DNA from: Selaginella moellendorffii
Taxonomy: Eukaryota; Plantae; Lycopodiophyta
Direction of reading: 5' to 3'
Assembly (NCBI RefSeq): GCF_000143415.4
Contig: NW_003314312.1
Location: 253,261 to 317,260, forward strand
DNA: 64,000 bases
Below are positions 4,484 to 13,199 of the stretch, piece by piece. A model generated the notes under the pieces. The model searched no databases. It was given only the letters and a program-made list of their open reading frames with translations, and was not told the DNA's origin. A program made the translations under genes and the position numbers. How positions within the stretch are numbered: position 1 is the first letter of the stretch; every line of letters starts with the position of its first letter.

Positions 4484-6148
4484 ATGGTTCTCTGTCGAGA
4501 AGAAGAAGAAGAAGAAGAAGAAGGGGAAGAGGAGGAGGAGGAGGAGGAGGAGGAAGATTTTGCCGATGAACACACTGGCATTCTCTTCCCCAGAGAGAAA
4601 GAAATCGAAAATGCAACAGCGCCAGTGAATTTGAGTTTGGGATTGGTGGAAAAGGAGAAAATCCAGATTGAAGGAGGAGGAGGAGGAGGAGATGATGCAA
4701 GAAATTCTCTCTTCCAGATTGGAATTCCAGCGATTCGCGCCGAGCTCGCCATGCAATTCCGCCTGGGGTGCCCCATCATGGCCATGAATCTCATCTGGTT
4801 CGCCAAATTCCTAGCCACCACGCTCTTCCTGGGCCGGCTGGGCGGCGTGGAGCTCGCGGGAGGCGCCCTAGCTCTCACCTTCGCCAATGTCACCGGCTAC
4901 TCGATCCTCCTCGGCCTCGCCACTGGAATGGAGCCGATTTGCAGCCAGGCATTCGGCGCCGGGCGGATGGATCTCATGGCCTCAGCGCTCCAAAATGCGA
5001 TCCTCATGTTGCTCCTGGCGTGCATTCCAATCGCCCTCGCCTGGCTCTACAGCGTTGAGAGATTCTTGATCTTCTTGGGCCAAGATCCATCCCTGGCCCG
5101 CGCCTCAGCAAGATTCTTGAAATTTCTCCTCCCGGATCTGTTCCTCCAGGCCGTGATCACTCCCCTGCGGATCTTCCTGCGCTGCCAGAGCGACACACTG
5201 CCAATGACCATCGCCTTCACTGCCGGGATTCTCCTCCACATTGGCCTCGGATTCCTGCTCGCCATGGACCTGCGCGGCGCTGGGATTGCTCTGGCGATGG
5301 GCATTGGCGATCTTTTCACGCTCGCGCTGCTTTTAAGTCTCGTCCTCGCCAAGAGCAGAGCCTCTTCTTCCAAGAACCCTAAAATCGAGAACACGAAGAA
5401 CACGAGGAGGAAGAGATGGAAGCCACTGATCAAACTGGCACTGCCCTCGTGCGCCATGGTCTGTCTTGAGTGGTGGAGCTACGAGGCCATCGTTCTTCTT
5501 GCCGGGCTGCTCCAGGATCCAGAAATCTCCGTCCCAGCTGCCGCGATCGTGCTGAATTTCGACGCAATCCTCTACGCGCTCCAGATCACGCTCGCCTCCT
5601 GCACCGCCACCCGAATCGGCCACGAGCTGGGCGCGAATTCGCCCTCCTCTGCCCGGACCGCGGCAATCGCATCGCTGCTCGCAAGCCTGGCAATGGGATC
5701 GGCGACCTTCGCCTCTCTGGCGGCGTTGCGATCGCTGTGGGGGCGGCTCTTCACGGCCGATCCAGCGATTGTGCGCAGCGTAAGGCGATCGATGCCGGTG
5801 GCGGGTGCGATCGAGCTCGCCAATTTCCCGCTGCTGGTGCTGTGCGGGATCTTGCGTGGGAGCGCGAGGCCAGCGGCGGGCGCGGTGGCGAGCCTGGGAT
5901 CGTTCTACCTCATTGGGCTGCCGTGTGGAGTGGCGCTGGGATTTGGGGCGGGGCTGGGCCTGGTGGGGCTGTGGCTGGGATTGCTAGCGGCGGTGGTGGC
6001 GTGTGTGGCGCTCACGGGGATGGTTGTTCTTGGCACGGACTGGAAGGAGATGGCCATGGCTTCCCAGCTGCAAATCCGATCTTGGGACACTCCTAGCGAA
6101 GTGTGGCATTCTAACGATCCTGATGGAAAAGAAATGGATGAAATTTAA
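4484..6148 (+). CDS. MATE/DTX efflux transporter, intronless clade
   Basis: 554-aa ORF with LGRLGGVELAGG, GMEPICSQAFGA, CLEWWSYE, TRIGHELGAN and FYLIGLP motifs, multiple TM segments and an N-terminal poly-Glu tract. Confidence 0.95.
   Translation: MVLCREEEEEEEEGEEEEEEEEEEDFADEHTGILFPREKEIENATAPVNLSLGLVEKEKIQIEGGGGGGDDARNSLFQIGIPAIRAELAMQFRLGCPIMAMNLIWFAKFLATTLFLGRLGGVELAGGALALTFANVTGYSILLGLATGMEPICSQAFGAGRMDLMASALQNAILMLLLACIPIALAWLYSVERFLIFLGQDPSLARASARFLKFLLPDLFLQAVITPLRIFLRCQSDTLPMTIAFTAGILLHIGLGFLLAMDLRGAGIALAMGIGDLFTLALLLSLVLAKSRASSSKNPKIENTKNTRRKRWKPLIKLALPSCAMVCLEWWSYEAIVLLAGLLQDPEISVPAAAIVLNFDAILYALQITLASCTATRIGHELGANSPSSARTAAIASLLASLAMGSATFASLAALRSLWGRLFTADPAIVRSVRRSMPVAGAIELANFPLLVLCGILRGSARPAAGAVASLGSFYLIGLPCGVALGFGAGLGLVGLWLGLLAAVVACVALTGMVVLGTDWKEMAMASQLQIRSWDTPSEVWHSNDPDGKEMDEI
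4499..4556 (+). repeat. (GAA)n/(GAG)n coding microsatellite (poly-Glu)
   Basis: Directly visible in the sequence. Confidence 0.9.
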
Positions 6149-6242
6149 ATCCTGGAATATTTTATATTCTAAGCTTATTCGCTATGATTAAATTGAATTT
6201 TACCGCCTTTTTGCTACTTACCTTTACCATCACCACTATAAT

Positions 6243-6347
6243 NNNNNNNNNNNNNNNNNNNNNNNNNNNNNNNNNNNNNNNNNNNNNNNNNNNNNNNNNN
6301 NNNNNNNNNNNNNNNNNNNNNNNNNNNNNNNNNNNNNNNNNNNNNNN
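6243..6347. other. Assembly gap (N run)
   Basis: N bases. Confidence 1.
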
Positions 6348-7845
6348 AATCTTTGTGGAGTTTGCAGCCACCTAACAAGGAAGTCCACTCCACCTCGTCA
6401 GGGATAAAGGGCATATTCCAGACTAGATCTTGGGCATCTCGCAAATGCCCGGCTCTACTTAACAAATCCACCATGCAACCATAGTGCTCCTTGAGAGGCC
6501 TCAGCCCGTGATCCCCAGCCATCGATCTAAAGCAGTCCCAGCCGTCCGATACCATGCCGCCGTGGCTGCATCCCAGCAGCACGCAGCACAGGGAGATCTC
6601 GTTGGGCCGGATGCCGTCCAGTACCATCGTACGGAACACATCCAACGCTCCCTGGAAGCGCCCGGCCCTGGCGTACGCTCCAACCAGGCACGTCCACGCC
6701 ACCACGTTCCGTACGCCCATGCCGGCAAAGAAGCGCTGGGCGTCTTCCAGATTCCCGGCCAGCGCATATGCCCCTAGCATCGAGGCCTCGGATGCCGTGT
6801 CGTGATACGGCATCTCGCTGAAGATCCTCCGGCATTCATAGATATTCCTACCGTACGCGTGGGCTGTGAGCAGTGCCGTCCAGGAGAGGATGTCGCGCTC
6901 GGGCATGAGCTGGAAGAGGCGCGCGGTTTTCCGCGCGTCCCCAAGCCGGGAATATCCGCCTAGCATGGTGTTCCACGTGACGAGATTCCTGGCCGGCATC
7001 GCGTGGAAATAACGATTGGCCTCGTCAGCGCTGCTGGCAAAGCACACATCCAGTAAGATCGTCCACGTCACCACGTCGTACAGTGGCATAGCACGGAACA
7101 CCGCCATGGCGTCCTTGAGCCGATGGTGTCCGTACTGTGAATATGCCCCTAGGAGAGTGCTCCATGTGATGAGATTCCTCTCTGGCGTGGCGTGAAAGAG
7201 CGCTATCGCCGAGTTTAAATCGCCGGATCTCATGGAAGAAGAGAGTGCCGCGTTCCAGGCCACCACGCTCCACTGTGGCATTCGATCAAACACAAGCCTG
7301 GCTCGAGCAAAATTTCCTTCTTGGGTATTTGCCGAGAGGAGGATGATCCACGACACAATGTCTCGCTCTGGAATTCGATCGAAGAGATCTTCCAGCTCGC
7401 GGATCCGGCCAAACTGGTCGTAGGCCGCGAGCATCGTGTTCCAGGAGATGACGCTGGGGAATCGAATGCCGTCGAAAATAGACTCCGCGAGATCCAAATC
7501 ACCCGCCCTGGCCGCCGCCGCCACTGCCGCGGTGGAGGAAACCACATCCAATTGGGGCATCCTGGCCAGGATCGAGAGCGCACGAGAGAGATCTCTGCTG
7601 CTGGCGAGCCACGAGAGGAGGATTTGGCGCCAGGAGAAGGGATTCCTGGCGGGCATGGAGTGAAAGAGGGCGAGCGCATCGCGGATGCTGGAGCAGGCGC
7701 CATACATCTGGATGAGGAGATTGGAGAGAAAGATGCCGTCGGTGGACATGAATCGTGATTGCAGCACCTGGGAGTGGACATTGCGAGCATCGGCAATGTG
7801 GCGCACGGATCTGATCAGCCGGACGCACTCATCCACACACCGCAT
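6348..7845 (-). CDS. PLS-class PPR protein with E domain, 3' end lost in the gap
   Basis: Repeated MP.RN/DxxSW motifs, HYGCMVDLLSRAG and MPFIPDEVEWTSLLGGC. The ORF runs into the Ns. Confidence 0.9.
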
Positions 7846-8975: not shown

Positions 8976-9771
8976 ATGAAAATGGCAGCGAAAGATCCTT
9001 ACAGAAGCCACATTCATGGAGATGCCGAGAAGACCACCTACTGGAGACATGGAGAACCTCCGTGTTATGACAACAGAGCCTTTGAGGAAGGTAGGAGAAA
9101 GGTAAGTCAGTCGCTAGATTGTGAGAGACGAGGTATCGCTCACCTTGCTCGAGTTCAATTGGATTGATGCAGGTATGGCCGAGTGGATCACTGGAAGAGA
9201 TCGTTCAAAACCTCGTCAAGACGTGGGAGATGGAGATGAGCCACAAATGCCATGTCGAGGACGTCAAAACAGTCGATCATCAGCTCTTCACACTCGCGGT
9301 GAATGGTAGGCAAGAATTTCACAGCATCATCTTCTTCTGAGTTTCTTCTATGTAGGAAGAACATCAAAGCCAGTCGACGAAGTTGTGAGAACCGGAACAT
9401 ATAACATCTTACTTCAATCCGAAGCTCCCTGTGCATACTATGACTCCTCCAAAGAAAACTTTGAATCCTCACACCATACCTTCCACCACGCCTTCAACAA
9501 TAAGTTTCCATGGGAAGTTCTTCAAGTGTACTCCGGACCTCCTGTTGTTGTCTTCAAGTGGAGGCACTGGGGAAGAATGAAAGGAGAATTTCGAGGTCAT
9601 GCTGCTACAGGGGAATTAGTCGAGATCATCGGAGTTGCTGTTGCTACTGTGAATAGCGAGCTCAAGCTCACGAGTGTTGAAGTTTACTTCGATCAGGAGC
9701 AGTTCCTTAAGAAGCTGTGCAAAGGAAAGAAATCTTCGTTAGAAGATGTAAACGCAAATGCCGTCACTTAA
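8976..9771 (+). CDS. Pathogen-related protein (SnoaL/NTF2-like PRP family, 3 exons)
   Basis: WRHGEPPCYD, GSLEEIVQNLVKTWEME, GTYNILL, FPWEVLQVYSGPPVVVFKWRHWG. Confidence 0.88.
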
Positions 9772-9880
9772 GTGAAAGCATCCTTGGAAATCTTCTGTAA
9801 ATTTGAACAGCTCATCGAAAGAAGCCATGAGACTTTTACCTGTATCTGATTTCTCTGCCTTTTGGAAGGCTGTGAACATA

Positions 9881-11538
9881 TCAATGCTCAAAAAGTCCCT
9901 TTTTCGTCCAGCTCGGGGTGCGTAGTAGCCTTCCTTTCGCGATTACATACTTAACGTCCAGACTGCTTTGATCCAGCACTAGAACGTCTCCGTCGCTTCC
10001 AGGACTTAAATGACCTGCCAAAAACGTTTGCATATATACATATATATACAAACATGGAAGCTAGATGAATCAATAGTACCTTTGTGAGAAAGTGAAAGAA
10101 ACTTGGCTGGATTCTTTGTGCTTAACGAGATGGCATTTTCAACTTTCCACTCGGCTTCTCGAATTAGCCTCCTGATTGTGTTTAGATTTGCAAGAGGCGA
10201 GGCAACCGCATACTTGACAAGGTTGCCTTTGCTGTCAAAGACTGGAAGAGAACCAAATGCGTCAGAAGAAATGGAAACAGCAGTGGTAGGCACATCTCTG
10301 TCCGCCCAGTCTTTAAGAGCGTCATAAGATGCAGTCTCGCCTTCTTGATCGGAGGTAAAGTCGACAAGGCCTCCAGCTTTTACCCACACTTCCGCAGCCT
10401 ATAAAAAGGTTTGAGAACGTAAAAGCTACAAGAAAAGTATACCTTCACTAGTTCTGGTCCCCGATGAGAAACATGAGTTGGGATCATCTGCGTGAGAGGT
10501 ATAGCTTCTCTACTCGCGTTGAAAACAGACCAAAGAGGGTCGAGCAGCGAAGAAGCACTGCCAACGTGAAAGTGAACAATTCCAGCTTTTCCCGAGAGCA
10601 TCCCTCCAACTCTTGCGTCAGAAACAAGGTGTAAAAGTTCCTGCGTGAAACCACGTCAGAAAAGATAAGAAAAATTGTAGCTAATTTTACCTCGGTGCTC
10701 GGCCAGCTGCCACGATGATCGCTGATGGCAATTTCTCCGGCGCCAATTACTTCGTTGATAAGCTGAAGATCTCTTACTAAGTTGCCTGATAGATGTTTTG
10801 GTCGTATCTAAGCTGTACAAGAGAAAAAAGAATGGACAAACCTGTCAAAGTTGGAGATGGTACTCTATAGCAGCCACTCCACATATACGCTGTTATTCCT
10901 TCCTCTTGCAAGGCTTTGGCCTTTGTTCTTAAGTTCTCAAGGCTACAAGGAGCAAAAGAGTTATAATCCAGAAGACAAAGGAAAAAAAAAAATTGAAAAG
11001 AAAGGAGCATTTGCTCGAGAAAGAAAAAAAACGGAGAAGAGATGAGCGACTCATACCTTCTCGACACACAATCGGTGCCTAGGACTCCCACAAGCGTAGT
11101 GATGCCGGCTTCTAGAATCTCTGCTAGCCCAGCTTCCGGAGTTCTACTGGAAGGTCCCATCTCTCCACCACCACCAGTGATATGGACGTGCATATCAATC
11201 AAACCTGGCACGACAATGTCGCCCTCCACATCGATCACCTCGAGAAGAGGAATCCCTGTGAGGTTGATCCATGGAAACTGCTGCTCCGAGAACACAGCTA
11301 GAACGGATCCTCCACCTAGCAGAATGTGAGCCTTTCCAATCGGCTCTGGCGTGTACACCAATCCATTCTTGACCAGAATCATCGTGGCTTCTCGTTCCTC
11401 GCCGCCGATCTGGCCCGCTACCGCGAAATCCCACTCCACAATCCCCGGATCGAGAGACTTACACGATGTCCCAGATGACATAAGCGGCAAGAATGCCGCC
11501 AGCAGCGCTAGCTCCAAGAAAATCAGAGGTCCAGCCAT
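9881..11538 (-). CDS. iadA: Isoaspartyl dipeptidase (beta-aspartyl peptidase, IadA-type amidohydrolase) with N-terminal hydrophobic signal
   Basis: PGLIDMHVHITGGGGEMGPSSRTPE, GITTLVGVLGTD, GCYRVP, GAGEIAISDHR, HFHVG, PTHV, SSDAFGSLPVF and C-terminal KGLFEH* (stop at 9881). Several spliceosomal introns. Confidence 0.9.
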
Positions 11539-13199
11539 TGTCCCGAGAACCCTAGCGCATGGAAGTGGGGCATCTTAAAAATGCAAGATATCTCATATAC
11601 AAATTGCCACCCTCAAAGTTCACAAAAACAAGCAATGTTTGGAAGGGTGCTTGAATAAACACTATAGCTTAGATCCAGTCGTTCATTTTATTTGTTAGCA
11701 TTTACCGCTACCTTTTTTTTTTGACTTCGAACTCGATCGTAATTGTACGGTCTTTTTAGTATCTTCTTAAGAATATTAATCTGATTATAAGATACGGCCG
11801 CTTGTACCTATTGGATAGCTTTTTCACGTGGGAGGGACATCATAATAAATATTGAGTACTTACTTACTGGCAAAGTGGAACATTAGCTTCAATGTGTTGA
11901 AATACCCTACTAGAGGGAATTTTACAATATGCATCTCTATATATTGGATGGGCAAGAAGCATAGTGTTAGCTGGGAAATTCCAAATTTGCTAAATGGAGT
12001 ATAGTGTCTTAGTCTCTAGGATTTTGTATTAATTTAGAGGACTTTACTAGATTTTTTATTCTTTCACTTCACTTGTAAATTCTTTTTCCCACTTACTACA
12101 TTTTCTTTTATTCCACAAGAGTTGCATACTTACACAAATAGTGAGAAACCATTGAAAAGATATGGATAAAAATTATTACATATATGTAGTGGAAGCTATT
12201 AAATAGAATGACGTTATTGATGAATAAAATATTAATTATATCTTAGAAAAAGAATCTGAGGTGGAGATGATGAAATATTATTTGTTTAGTATTTAGTTTT
12301 AATAATGTATTATAAATTTAAATTACTTAAATTTTTACTTTAAAATATTTATTATCTATCATTTGCCTCAATGATGAGTTATCAATTTATTCATTATATT
12401 TGTACCTAATTAAGTTACATAAAAAAAGTCTAAAAAGAATATTATACATGAATAGATGTCAATAGCGGAGAATATGTATCATGTCAATGCTACATTCTTG
12501 ATCAAAAACTAAATTCAAAATAATATCAATACTAAACTTTTAAATTTTTTTTTGACAACAAAGTGAAATATTTTTATCTTAATATGCAAAAAAATGTAAC
12601 TTTTTAGATAAATAAAATAAAATAATTAAAATGATATATTAAATAACATGTTAAAAGTTATAAAATATAGGTGGATAAACTAATTTAAATAGTTTTAAAT
12701 TTTAAAATTAAAAAATATTGAATAAATTATTTTTATTGTTATGAATTTAAAATAATAAAATTATTATATTAATTTGATATATCTAATGAAGAACCAAATC
12801 TTATGCATATATTTTAGATAAGAAAGTGTACCACAACTCCTTGAGTGTTAATTTTAAGTTCTGTAAAAGTGTTTTTAATATAAAATTTATCATTAAAATG
12901 TCAAAGTAAATTACATGCAATAAGTGGTGTGGCCTTGGTAGTGGAGTTGAGAATGCTAGTGAAGTTTGGTGTACTATAGCAAAGAGTCATGCACTTATTA
13001 AAGCATTTGAGGATCTCATATTACATTTTTAGTGATGCATTATAGCATTGCATTTTAGCATTCTGGAGAGTCGACAGCTTCTAATTTCAGGTATTGGAAG
13101 AATTAATTCCAGGGATTGTTGAGTTCTAGTTCCAAGCATATTAGTTTTCTAGCCATATCTGAGATTCAAGTAAGCTCTTAAATAGGAGCTTGGCACTCA

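Follow-up and report, generated by a model that had tools for sequence, protein, structure and literature searches.

Results

An IadA-type gene of Selaginella moellendorffii

The window, by which we mean the whole stretch of 64,000 nucleotides analyzed here, lies on a 1.44 Mb plant scaffold of Selaginella moellendorffii. On its minus strand, between positions 11538 and 9881, is the coding span of LOC9634176, which is made up of six coding exons and five GT-AG introns and specifies a protein of 442 amino acids (Table 1). The spliced translation agrees letter for letter with the NCBI entry 'uncharacterized protein LOC9634176 [Selaginella moellendorffii]'. All five coding introns were recovered as exact joints in spliced contigs from four public runs belonging to four studies, and they are AT-richer than the coding sequence (30-36% versus 50% GC). 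One spliced contig extends to position 11557, 19 nt 5' of the ATG, contig ends being no mark of transcript starts, and the gene's stretch is present, whole or in part, in 20 run rows from 9 studies. Beyond the intron in its 3' UTR, the next exon of LOC9634176 runs antisense into the adjoining plus-strand gene.

Table 1. Features of LOC9634176, with positions counted from the first letter of the window.
Feature	Position	Strand	Remarks
Whole IadA-type coding span	9881..11538	minus	442 codons plus stop; all joints seen in spliced contigs
Signal-like segment MAGPLIFLELALLAAFLPLMSSG, codons 1-23	11470..11538	minus	Hydrophobic; small residues at -3/-1 (S21, G23)
Linker, codons 24-52	11383..11469	minus	Non-conserved; between signal and catalytic domain; prokaryotic homologues lack it
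Exon 1, codons 1-161 (split codon)	11057..11538	minus	Signal-like segment, linker, start of beta-sandwich, HxH (H117 at 11190-11188, H119 at 11184-11182), E126 (11163-11161)
Intron 1, 114 nt, phase 2, after codon 160	10943..11056	minus	Position and phase common to Marchantia and Sphagnum
Exon 2	10842..10942	minus	C185; Y186 (10869-10867), equivalent of EcIadA Y137
Intron 2, 56 nt, phase 1, codon 195	10786..10841	minus	Selaginella only, of the four genes compared
Exon 3	10691..10785	minus	Metal-bridging E212 (10735-10733) in GAGEIAISDHR
Intron 3, 50 nt, phase 0, before codon 227	10641..10690	minus	Common to Marchantia and Sphagnum
Exon 4	10443..10640	minus	H251 (10568-10566); sequon N267-A-S (10520-10518); H282 (10475-10473); R286
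Intron 4, 44 nt, phase 0, before codon 293	10399..10442	minus	Common to Marchantia and Sphagnum
Exon 5	10080..10398	minus	D338 (10263-10261) in SSDAFGS
Intron 5, 65 nt, phase 1, codon 399	10015..10079	minus	Common to Marchantia, Sphagnum and Klebsormidium
Exon 6, coding part	9881..10014	minus	C-terminal beta-sandwich strands; stop TGA at 9883-9881
Sixth intron, 3' UTR, 125 nt, GT..AG	9715..9839	minus	41 nt past the stop; joint 9714/9840 in three of the four runs

LOC9634176 is an intact, expressed nuclear gene of the plant. The chance that it is instead an artefact, either bacterial DNA contaminating the assembly or a dead gene, is vanishingly small, and we rejected it because the introns are spliceosomal and verified in transcripts, the neighbors on the scaffold are MATE, PPR and SnoaL-like genes, and the frame is open with every catalytic residue kept. 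The 14 variant sites found in the gene include no stop, no frameshift and no change at a catalytic residue.

LOC9634176 encodes a genuine IadA-family protein

Against TIGR01975 (beta-aspartyl-peptidase; MEROPS M38 holotype family), the protein reaches 389.1 bits with an E-value of 2.5e-116, and the match takes in profile positions 2-389 of 389. The score exceeds the equivalog cutoff of 331.25 bits and is far past chance; each of the four exon pieces tested also matches the profile separately. Nine PDB sequences match with E-values up to 1e-10, and all of them are IadAs (E 1e-85 to 4e-71). The AlphaFold model (pLDDT 90.8, pTM 0.87) predicts an amidohydrolase (beta/alpha)8 barrel with a composite beta-sandwich domain that superposes on solved IadAs. 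In a Foldseek search its 28 best matches are IadAs without exception (TMt 0.92-0.96, rmsd 1.7-2.7 Å), headed by the E. coli enzyme (1ONX; TMt 0.94, rmsd 1.9 Å), and about 20 orders of magnitude in E-value lie between the IadA matches and the next protein, NagA. LOC9634176 thus encodes a genuine member of the IadA family (MEROPS M38, TIGR01975). The first-pass annotation had claimed, from the letters of the DNA, a land-plant gene of the IadA family interrupted by spliceosomal introns, and the profile score together with the joints in the spliced contigs bears this out.

The complete set of amidohydrolase metal ligands reported in that annotation was likewise recovered when the ligands were read off alignments with E. 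coli IadA (1ONW) and FiBAP (7CF6), with one clarification. H117, H119, E212, H251, H282 and D338 align to EcIadA H68, H70, Kcx162, H201, H230 and D285, respectively; H117 and H119 form an HVH motif, H282 is the histidine of PTH, and the ligand within HFHVG is the second histidine, H251, not the first. E126, T155 and Y186 match EcIadA E77, T106 and Y137, and R286 is the likely counterpart of R233, the pairwise alignment placing the two one residue apart. Across an alignment of 50 sequences, H117, H119, E126, T155, Y186, H251, H282 and D338 are invariant and R286 is nearly so; the roles assigned to these residues are those described for IadA (PMC10206079). Along its length, the E. coli enzyme (1ONW/1YBQ), the founding Type II member, aligns over residues 10-388 with Selaginella 54-441 at 36-38% identity. 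It differs in its carboxylated Lys162 bridge, in lacking a one-residue GE insertion, and in being cytosolic.

Glutamate in place of lysine at the metal-bridging position had been singled out as a special feature of the gene. This part of the annotation did not survive: glutamate as bridging ligand defines the published "Type I" IadAs (PMC7774594), E159 of the active LmIadA being one example (PMC10206079), and among 167 relatives the column of E212 holds glutamate in 141 and lysine in 25, so that 166 of the 167 have one or the other. We accordingly rejected the bridging glutamate as a novelty. By alignment LOC9634176 is a Type I (Glu-bridged) IadA, and its best PDB sequence match (E 1.1e-85) is the Type I enzyme FiBAP of Fervidobacterium islandicum AW-1 (PDB 7CDH/7CF6). 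The two share the fold (TMt 0.95-0.96) and the motif GxGEIAISDHR, which reads GAGEIAISDHR in Selaginella and GVGEIAISDHR in FiBAP. The Glu-bridged FiBAP has demonstrated beta-aspartyl peptidase activity and complements an E. coli iadA mutant (PMC7774594). Unlike the Selaginella protein, to which it is about 41% identical, FiBAP is bacterial, intronless, cytosolic and without an N-terminal extension; it sits on the bacterial side of the trees described below, and its spacing from the PTH histidine to the conserved arginine is shorter by one residue.

Two features near the active site deserve separate mention. The spacing between H282 and R286 is one residue longer than in E. coli IadA owing to an insertion after H282, which is common to streptophytes, several protists and Sorochytrium and could alter the fit of the substrate. 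In addition, the cysteines C157 and C185, which flank the substrate-contacting residues T155 and Y186, occur together only in streptophytes among the relatives compared (9/9), and a disulfide between them is proposed. The association statistic for this pair is no evidence, because the co-occurrence amounts to a single phylogenetic event. Both the insertion and the streptophyte-specific cysteines, along with a presumed compartment unlike that of the bacterial enzyme, are what might be expected if a eukaryotic secretory branch had turned the IadA scaffold to a substrate other than beta-aspartyl dipeptides. We consider such a change of function improbable, given that none of the published ligand, catalytic or substrate-binding residues has been lost (PMC10206079), that the profile score exceeds the equivalog cutoff, and that the model lies within 1.7-2.7 Å rmsd of solved IadAs.

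A signal-like N-terminus common to the land-plant proteins

The predicted start, M1, is encoded by the first ATG in frame downstream of an in-frame stop (TAA, 11577-11575), stands in an A(-3)/G(+4) context and lies inside an assembled transcript. The segment MAGPLIFLELALLAAFLPLMSSG that starts with it was described in the first-pass annotation as a hydrophobic, secretion-type N-terminus, and it is indeed present and signal-like, with an equivalent in all land-plant orthologues. Its Kyte-Doolittle 12-residue (KD12) maximum is 2.58, at residue 5. The segment is modelled as an isolated helix (residues 6-20) with low pLDDT, pLDDT is below 50 over residues 17-43, and the TIGR01975 match begins only at residue 54. 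A hydrophobic N-terminal segment with an extension is found in 7/7 embryophyte orthologues, the linker or extension ranging from 37 to 178 aa among orthologues. By rule-based scoring, KD12 maxima in these seven reach 2.3-3.0 within the first ~30 residues, whereas in forms without the signal the values are at most 1.9 and fall in the catalytic domain. The combination of hydrophobic N-terminal segment and extension also occurs in Rhodelphis, in three transcripts from protists and in three bdelloid rotifers; among the homologues compared, no such segment or extension was found in trebouxiophytes, Capsaspora or prokaryotes. Some of the orthologous signals are textbook-like, such as MKKIVVVAIFLTVSLNLQVHLARS in Sphagnum and MKFLYSVTIFLLGLLYVPSVAHS in a moss transcript. 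That of Selaginella has S21 and G23 ahead of T24 but is atypical in having E9 inside its h-region and no basic residue in its n-region.

The conserved N-terminal segment supports entry into the secretory pathway. On this reading, the land-plant proteins would carry a cleavable signal peptide followed by a disordered linker, and the mature enzyme of ~390-420 aa would most likely enter the ER and act in a non-cytosolic compartment, vacuole or apoplast. It is also conceivable, if rather unlikely, that the N-terminus is no cleaved secretion signal, being either an uncleaved endomembrane anchor or upstream of a cytosolic product begun at M53, possibly with dual localization. The irregular h- and n-regions of the Selaginella segment would fit this, as would the retention in 6/7 embryophyte orthologues of a methionine, M53, where the catalytic domain starts, the lack of an extension in the trebouxiophyte, Capsaspora and prokaryotic homologues, and the fact that the contigs leave the 5' end of the transcript unmapped. 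Against it stand the position of M1 as the first in-frame AUG, in strong context and within the assembled transcript, and the presence of a hydrophobic segment at the extreme N-terminus of every land-plant orthologue despite its unconserved sequence. The hydrophobic runs, at ~12-18 residues, are moreover short for a transmembrane anchor, and sequons (N-x-S/T) are conserved: the one at N267 is kept in 6/7 embryophytes and the one at N92 is found in Selaginella and mosses. As indirect hints of a location beyond the cytosol, these sequons stand beside the streptophyte-only pair C157/C185.

Retention in non-seed plants and scattered eukaryotes

Orthologues with 58-68% identity to the Selaginella protein are present in Sphagnum, Ceratodon, Calypogeia, Marchantia, Riccia and Klebsormidium. 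The one in Marchantia polymorpha is annotated 'beta-aspartyl-dipeptidase (metallo-type)', and all of the orthologue annotations are automatic only. These true orthologues share with Selaginella the signal-plus-linker layout, the cysteine pair and four intron positions; they differ in linker length and in lacking the one extra intron of Selaginella. The gene is also found in Tetraselmis striata and other algae, and related sequences are scattered across eukaryotes, with further carriers among trebouxiophytes, Rhodelphis, Capsaspora, early fungi/chytrids, bdelloid rotifers and protists. A possible tie between retention and desiccation tolerance was weighed, based on the mosses, liverworts, Klebsormidium, soil trebouxiophytes and bdelloids; because aquatic Tetraselmis, Rhodelphis, Capsaspora and chytrids carry the gene as well, we leave it as speculation.

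Ranked database searches, as distinct from genome-by-genome tblastn, returned no orthologue from seed plants in any search and none from ferns or hornworts, and no angiosperm protein was among the matches of at least 324 bits. MEROPS M38 also counts non-peptidase amidohydrolases (dihydroorotase, allantoinase, dihydropyrimidinase). Arabidopsis has M38 members (PMC8643629), and since the family includes such non-peptidases and no angiosperm protein matched at 324 bits or more, they were set aside as candidate orthologues. The first-pass annotation had offered two origins for the gene, differential retention or old horizontal acquisition. With orthologues in liverworts, mosses, Klebsormidium and Tetraselmis and no seed plant in any search, differential retention is the supported reading, and the gene has apparently been lost in seed plants. 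The land-plant branching also fits the species tree, as detailed next.

An old eukaryotic lineage

Trees were computed with 27 named eukaryotic sequences (streptophytes, chlorophytes, Rhodelphis, Capsaspora, early fungi and bdelloid rotifers). Together with two Heimdallarchaeota MAGs, whose sequences have lysine, not glutamate, at the bridging position, these eukaryotes split from all sampled bacteria. The branch that separates them has support of 100/99 in one tree and 98 in the tree with 27 eukaryotes; the trees are unrooted, and deep branching within the eukaryote/Heimdall group is without resolution. Embryophytes (100/93) and streptophytes (100/99) each form a clade, the streptophytes joining Tetraselmis and then other eukaryotes, and the topology within embryophytes agrees with the species tree. 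The best 80 prokaryote matches among contigs representing one genome per species reach 38-47% identity. When intron positions were mapped by exact spliced matching in the four genes compared, 4/5 Selaginella introns proved to coincide in position and phase with introns of Marchantia and Sphagnum, one of them also with an intron of Klebsormidium.

Taken together, the trees and introns indicate that LOC9634176 is part of an old eukaryotic clade that also contains Heimdallarchaeota, not a recent bacterial import, and that within streptophytes its inheritance is vertical since at least the land-plant ancestor. Several circumstances could nevertheless suggest that a bacterium gave iadA to an early land plant or to the streptophyte ancestor, with the introns and signal peptide gained later. 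The distribution in eukaryotes is patchy, and bdelloid rotifers, which are known for foreign genes, are among the carriers. The family as a whole is overwhelmingly prokaryotic and is called bacterial in the literature (PMC10206079). We nonetheless judge this scenario highly improbable and rejected horizontal transfer into land plants, because eukaryotes and Heimdallarchaeota split from all sampled bacteria, identities to prokaryotes are low and introns are shared. No sampled bacterium joins the streptophytes, whose nearest partners are Tetraselmis and then other eukaryotes. A recent transfer would place the gene within or sister to a bacterial clade and leave it absent from algal relatives; neither is observed with the sequences sampled. 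The claim of horizontal acquisition by land plants was thus the half of the earlier proposal that we abandoned.

Discussion

IadA has been treated as a cytosolic enzyme, and the turnover of isoaspartyl peptides in plants has been ascribed to Ntn-type asparaginases. In the literature IadA figures as a bacterial enzyme (PMC10206079), and literature searches turned up no publication that deals with an IadA from plants or other eukaryotes. LOC9634176 is a new eukaryotic member, known only from sequence, of this known enzyme family. We think it probable that the gene encodes a Type I IadA beta-aspartyl dipeptidase of an old, vertically inherited eukaryotic lineage, signal-bearing and non-cytosolic. 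By analogy with characterized family members, two Zn ions would be held by H117, H119, E212, H251 and H282; D338 and E126 would take part in catalysis, with Y186 stabilizing the intermediate; and T155 and R286 would bind the free alpha-carboxylate and the amino group of the substrate. The presumed reaction, in which both substrate and metal are those of the family, is the hydrolysis of beta-Asp-X dipeptides. Such dipeptides remain after the degradation of proteins with spontaneously formed isoaspartyl links, and beta-Asp-Arg from cyanophycin may be a further substrate.

The same reaction class, beta-aspartyl peptide hydrolysis, is carried out by the plant-type asparaginase/isoaspartyl aminopeptidase (EcAIII/IaaA). 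This Ntn hydrolase differs in fold and mechanism, which are unrelated to those of IadA: it uses an autoprocessed threonine nucleophile and no metal. It has plant and animal homologues (PMC10206079) and, in the passages of that paper that cite Hejazi 2002, is given as the isoaspartyl peptidase characterized in plants (PMC10206079). A broader reading, which we put forward tentatively and hold to be doubtful as a whole, is that eukaryotic IadA is ancient and possibly Asgard-derived, and that its signal-bearing branch (land plants, Rhodelphis, bdelloid rotifers and assorted protists) completes the breakdown of isoaspartyl-damaged proteins or scavenges cyanophycin-type beta-Asp-Arg in vacuole, lysosome or apoplast. 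M53 may add a cytosolic isoform in land plants, and seed plants would have lost the enzyme and rely on the Ntn type.

The understanding of the chemistry of the enzyme family is unchanged by LOC9634176; for work on how eukaryotes arose, the gene's grouping with Heimdallarchaeota offers a minor lead. The gene does provide what looks like a clean case of an old gene lost in seed plants, as opposed to horizontal transfer. The metallo-type enzyme kept by non-seed plants and scattered other eukaryotes is intact and expressed, and its place of action is probably non-cytosolic. In bryophytes and lycophytes it is a candidate for the final step in disposing of isoaspartyl peptides, for which Marchantia would be a tractable knockout system.

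The IadA-type gene and its transcript

Reading of the reverse complement and assembly of exons by script gave an IadA-type gene on the minus strand whose coding region is interrupted by five GT..AG introns of 114, 56, 50, 44 and 65 nt. These introns are AT-richer (30–36% GC) than the coding sequence (50% GC). The 442-residue product is identical to the database protein P0001, whose gene the NCBI record places on a 1.44-Mb scaffold. All or part of the IadA stretch is present in 20 public-run rows (9 studies), and all five predicted introns are skipped exactly in contigs of four runs (4 studies). One transcript contig includes 19 nt of sequence ahead of the ATG (up to 11557), so the N-terminal coding region is transcribed and runs unbroken into exon 1. 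Downstream of an in-frame TAA, the M1 codon is the first ATG in frame, and its context has A at -3 and G at +4. Among the transcript contigs, 14 variant sites were found (7 synonymous, 7 non-synonymous), none of which creates a stop or falls at a catalytic residue.

A sixth intron (125 nt, GT..AG) lies in the 3′ UTR, 41 nt past the stop codon, and the exon beyond it is antisense to the last coding exon of a convergent SnoaL-like gene. Based on this antisense exon and an unspliced contig over 9600-9839 seen in one run, the two genes appear to be a convergent pair with overlapping transcripts. The adjoining genes are ordinary plant genes. An assembly gap that translates as a run of X breaks the PPR gene near its 3′ end, and the window contains 205 N.

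Features of the IadA locus and its neighbours (window coordinates)
Feature	Position	Strand	Remarks
MATE transporter ORF	4484-6148	+	neighbour gene
PPR protein gene	6214-7845	-	neighbour; intronless, ~543 codons
SnoaL-like ORF	9385-9771	+	weak match, 22 bits, below Pfam's gathering score
IadA-type gene	9881-11538	-	
3′ UTR intron	9839-9715	-	
Coding exon 6	10014-9881	-	script-assembled model
Coding exon 5	10398-10080	-	script-assembled model
Coding exon 4	10640-10443	-	script-assembled model
Coding exon 3	10785-10691	-	script-assembled model
Intron 2	10786-10841	-	codon 195, phase 1
Coding exon 2	10942-10842	-	script-assembled model
Coding exon 1	11538-11057	-	script-assembled model
M53 codon	11382-11380	-	
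In-frame TAA	11577-11575	-	

Family membership and active site

P0001 matches TIGR01975 (isoAsp_dipep) across the entire 389-position profile with 389.1 bits (E 2.5e-116; curated equivalog cutoff 331.25), while the second-best family scores 51 bits. The same profile was matched by each of four exon pieces tested independently. Nine PDB sequences match at E up to 1e-10, and every one is an isoaspartyl dipeptidase (E 1e-85 to 4e-71). An AlphaFold model made with a 50-sequence alignment (mean pLDDT 90.8, pTM 0.87) had IadA structures as its best 28 Foldseek matches (TM by target 0.92-0.96, rmsd 1.7-2.7 Å), separated from the next, NagA, by about twenty orders of magnitude in E-value. By every sequence and fold criterion, the protein belongs to Type I of the IadA family.

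Alignment to E. coli IadA (counterparts in brackets) identified the metal ligands H117 and H119 (H68, H70), H251 (H201) and H282 (H230), the bridging ligand E212 (carboxy-K162), the catalytic D338 (D285), and residues for catalysis (E126; E77), substrate binding (T155; T106) and intermediate stabilisation (Y186; Y137). The HxH, PTH and Asp assignments of the first-pass annotation stand, and its ligand in HFHVG can be narrowed to the second His, H251. The substrate-binding R286 (R233) is our own assignment: the pairwise alignment sets R233 one position earlier, and R286 was chosen because it is a conserved Arg shifted by a one-residue insertion. R286 is nearly invariant in the 50-sequence alignment, and the other residues named, E212 aside, are invariant. 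The bridging Glu, previously singled out as a special feature, is present but ordinary, being found in 141 of the 167 full-length relatives collected (Lys in 25). A conserved Glu here defines Type I IadAs, of which FiBAP, from Fervidobacterium islandicum AW-1, has been shown to have beta-aspartyl peptidase activity and to rescue an iadA mutant of E. coli (PMC7774594). In Leucothrix IadA, E159 likewise occupies the place of the carboxylated K162 (PMC10206079).

Distribution and origin

A collection of 5.8 billion proteins, NCBI nr and UniRef included, was searched by word index and returned orthologues at 60-68% identity from Sphagnum, Calypogeia, Marchantia (auto-annotated "beta-aspartyl-dipeptidase (metallo-type)"), Riccia and Ceratodon, and at 58% from Klebsormidium. 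Pooling with a second search seeded with a protist sequence added, at ~43-53% identity, green algae (Tetraselmis, Micractinium, Coccomyxa, Myrmecia and a pedinophyte), Rhodelphis, Tribonema, Capsaspora, three early-diverging fungi and bdelloid rotifers. The rotifers (Adineta, Rotaria; P0276, P0278, P0281, P0282) were the only animals with homologues in the searches run, and their sequences form a tight clade within the eukaryotic group. An exhaustive search with exon 1 gave only five clusters below E 1e-30. The closest prokaryotes, among one-genome-per-species contigs, were 38-47% identical over the best 80 matches.

In a careful unrooted maximum-likelihood tree of 61 labelled sequences, a 100/99 branch separates all 17 eukaryotes and one Heimdallarchaeaceae MAG from a Hadarchaeum sequence and 42 bacteria. 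The tree also supports the streptophytes (100/99, Klebsormidium basal) and the embryophytes (100/93). A quick unrooted 80-sequence tree held 27 eukaryotes and two Heimdallarchaeota together (98) and joined Tetraselmis to the streptophytes (100); neither tree resolves the deep order within this group. The only prokaryotes grouping with eukaryotic IadA, the Heimdallarchaeota MAG proteins P0169 and P0280, are both Lys-type, whereas the eukaryotic sequences mostly have Glu. Because Lys-type sequences are scattered at several separate tree positions, the Glu/Lys switch seems to have occurred more than once.

When the loci of Marchantia, Sphagnum and Klebsormidium were splice-mapped exactly, four of the five introns of Selaginella proved to match Marchantia and Sphagnum in alignment column and phase (codon 161 phase 2, 227 phase 0, 293 phase 0 and 399 phase 1), the last also being present in Klebsormidium. 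Intron 2 occurs in none of the three, and was either gained in the lycophyte lineage or lost in bryophytes. The Klebsormidium nitens model (L086:3001-6262, P0159) is probably truncated or partly mis-called: its annotated protein begins within the catalytic domain, three residues are missing ahead of the GAGE motif, and 7 of its 8 introns lie in phase 0 at sites that land plants do not share. Judged from the sequence comparisons, the land-plant ancestor already had an IadA gene with introns. Of the two origins first proposed, horizontal acquisition by land plants from bacteria is not supported, given the 100/99 branch, the prokaryotic identities of at most 47% and the shared introns. Differential retention is favored by the orthologues in liverworts, mosses and Klebsormidium and by the intron-bearing ancestral gene. 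The word-index matches of at least 324 bits (NCBI nr and UniRef covered) include no proteins from seed plants, ferns or hornworts, and in both trees eukaryotes plus Heimdallarchaeota stand apart from the sampled bacteria.

The N-terminal extension

Residues 1-23 make up a hydrophobic stretch (Kyte-Doolittle 12-residue maximum 2.58), although one with a Glu inside its h-region, that ends in S-S-G and thus places small residues at -3/-1. The AlphaFold model shows a lone helix at residues 6-20 and pLDDT below 50 at residues 17-43; its confident part and the profile match both start at residue 53-54. A hydrophobic segment stands at the extreme N-terminus of each of the seven embryophyte orthologues, and a variable extension of 37-178 residues comes after it; what is conserved is this property, not the sequence. 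In one moss transcript the called ORF lacks the segment, but the in-frame sequence ahead of it reads MKFLYSVTIFLLGLLYVPSVAHS. Similar N-termini occur in Rhodelphis, three rotifers (P0276, P0278, P0282; signal-like) and several protist transcripts, but not in trebouxiophytes, Capsaspora, Paraphysoderma or any prokaryote compared.

Cys157 (exon 1) and Cys185 (exon 2) co-occur in 9/9 streptophyte sequences and 0/158 other relatives. Since they flank the substrate-contacting T155 and Y186, they may form a lineage-specific disulfide. The Cys pair and an N-x-S/T sequon at N267, kept in 6/7 embryophytes, hint at passage through the ER. We infer, with good comparative support, that land-plant IadA enters the secretory pathway. 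Neither an HDEL/KDEL motif nor an obvious vacuolar signal was found in the Selaginella protein, so several final compartments are possible. A Met at the catalytic-domain start (M53 in Selaginella) is present in 6/7 embryophyte orthologues, Riccia having Thr; it was noted in the land-plant proteins P0151, P0152, P0153, P0155 and P0157. This leaves room for a cytosolic isoform: the Met could be an alternative start, or it could be the ancestral start codon retained as a relic.

Discussion

The two most striking claims of the first-pass annotation, an unusual Glu and possible horizontal transfer, do not hold. Selaginella IadA nevertheless differs from the characterised members in its eukaryotic host and introns, its extra N-terminal predicted signal and linker, a one-residue insertion between H282 and R286, and its streptophyte-specific Cys pair. 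Our literature search found no paper on a plant or eukaryotic IadA; the enzyme is called bacterial, and plant isoaspartyl peptidase activity is assigned to Ntn-type asparaginases (PMC10206079). The Selaginella protein is a new, uncharacterised member of the known IadA family with predicted isoaspartyl dipeptidase activity.
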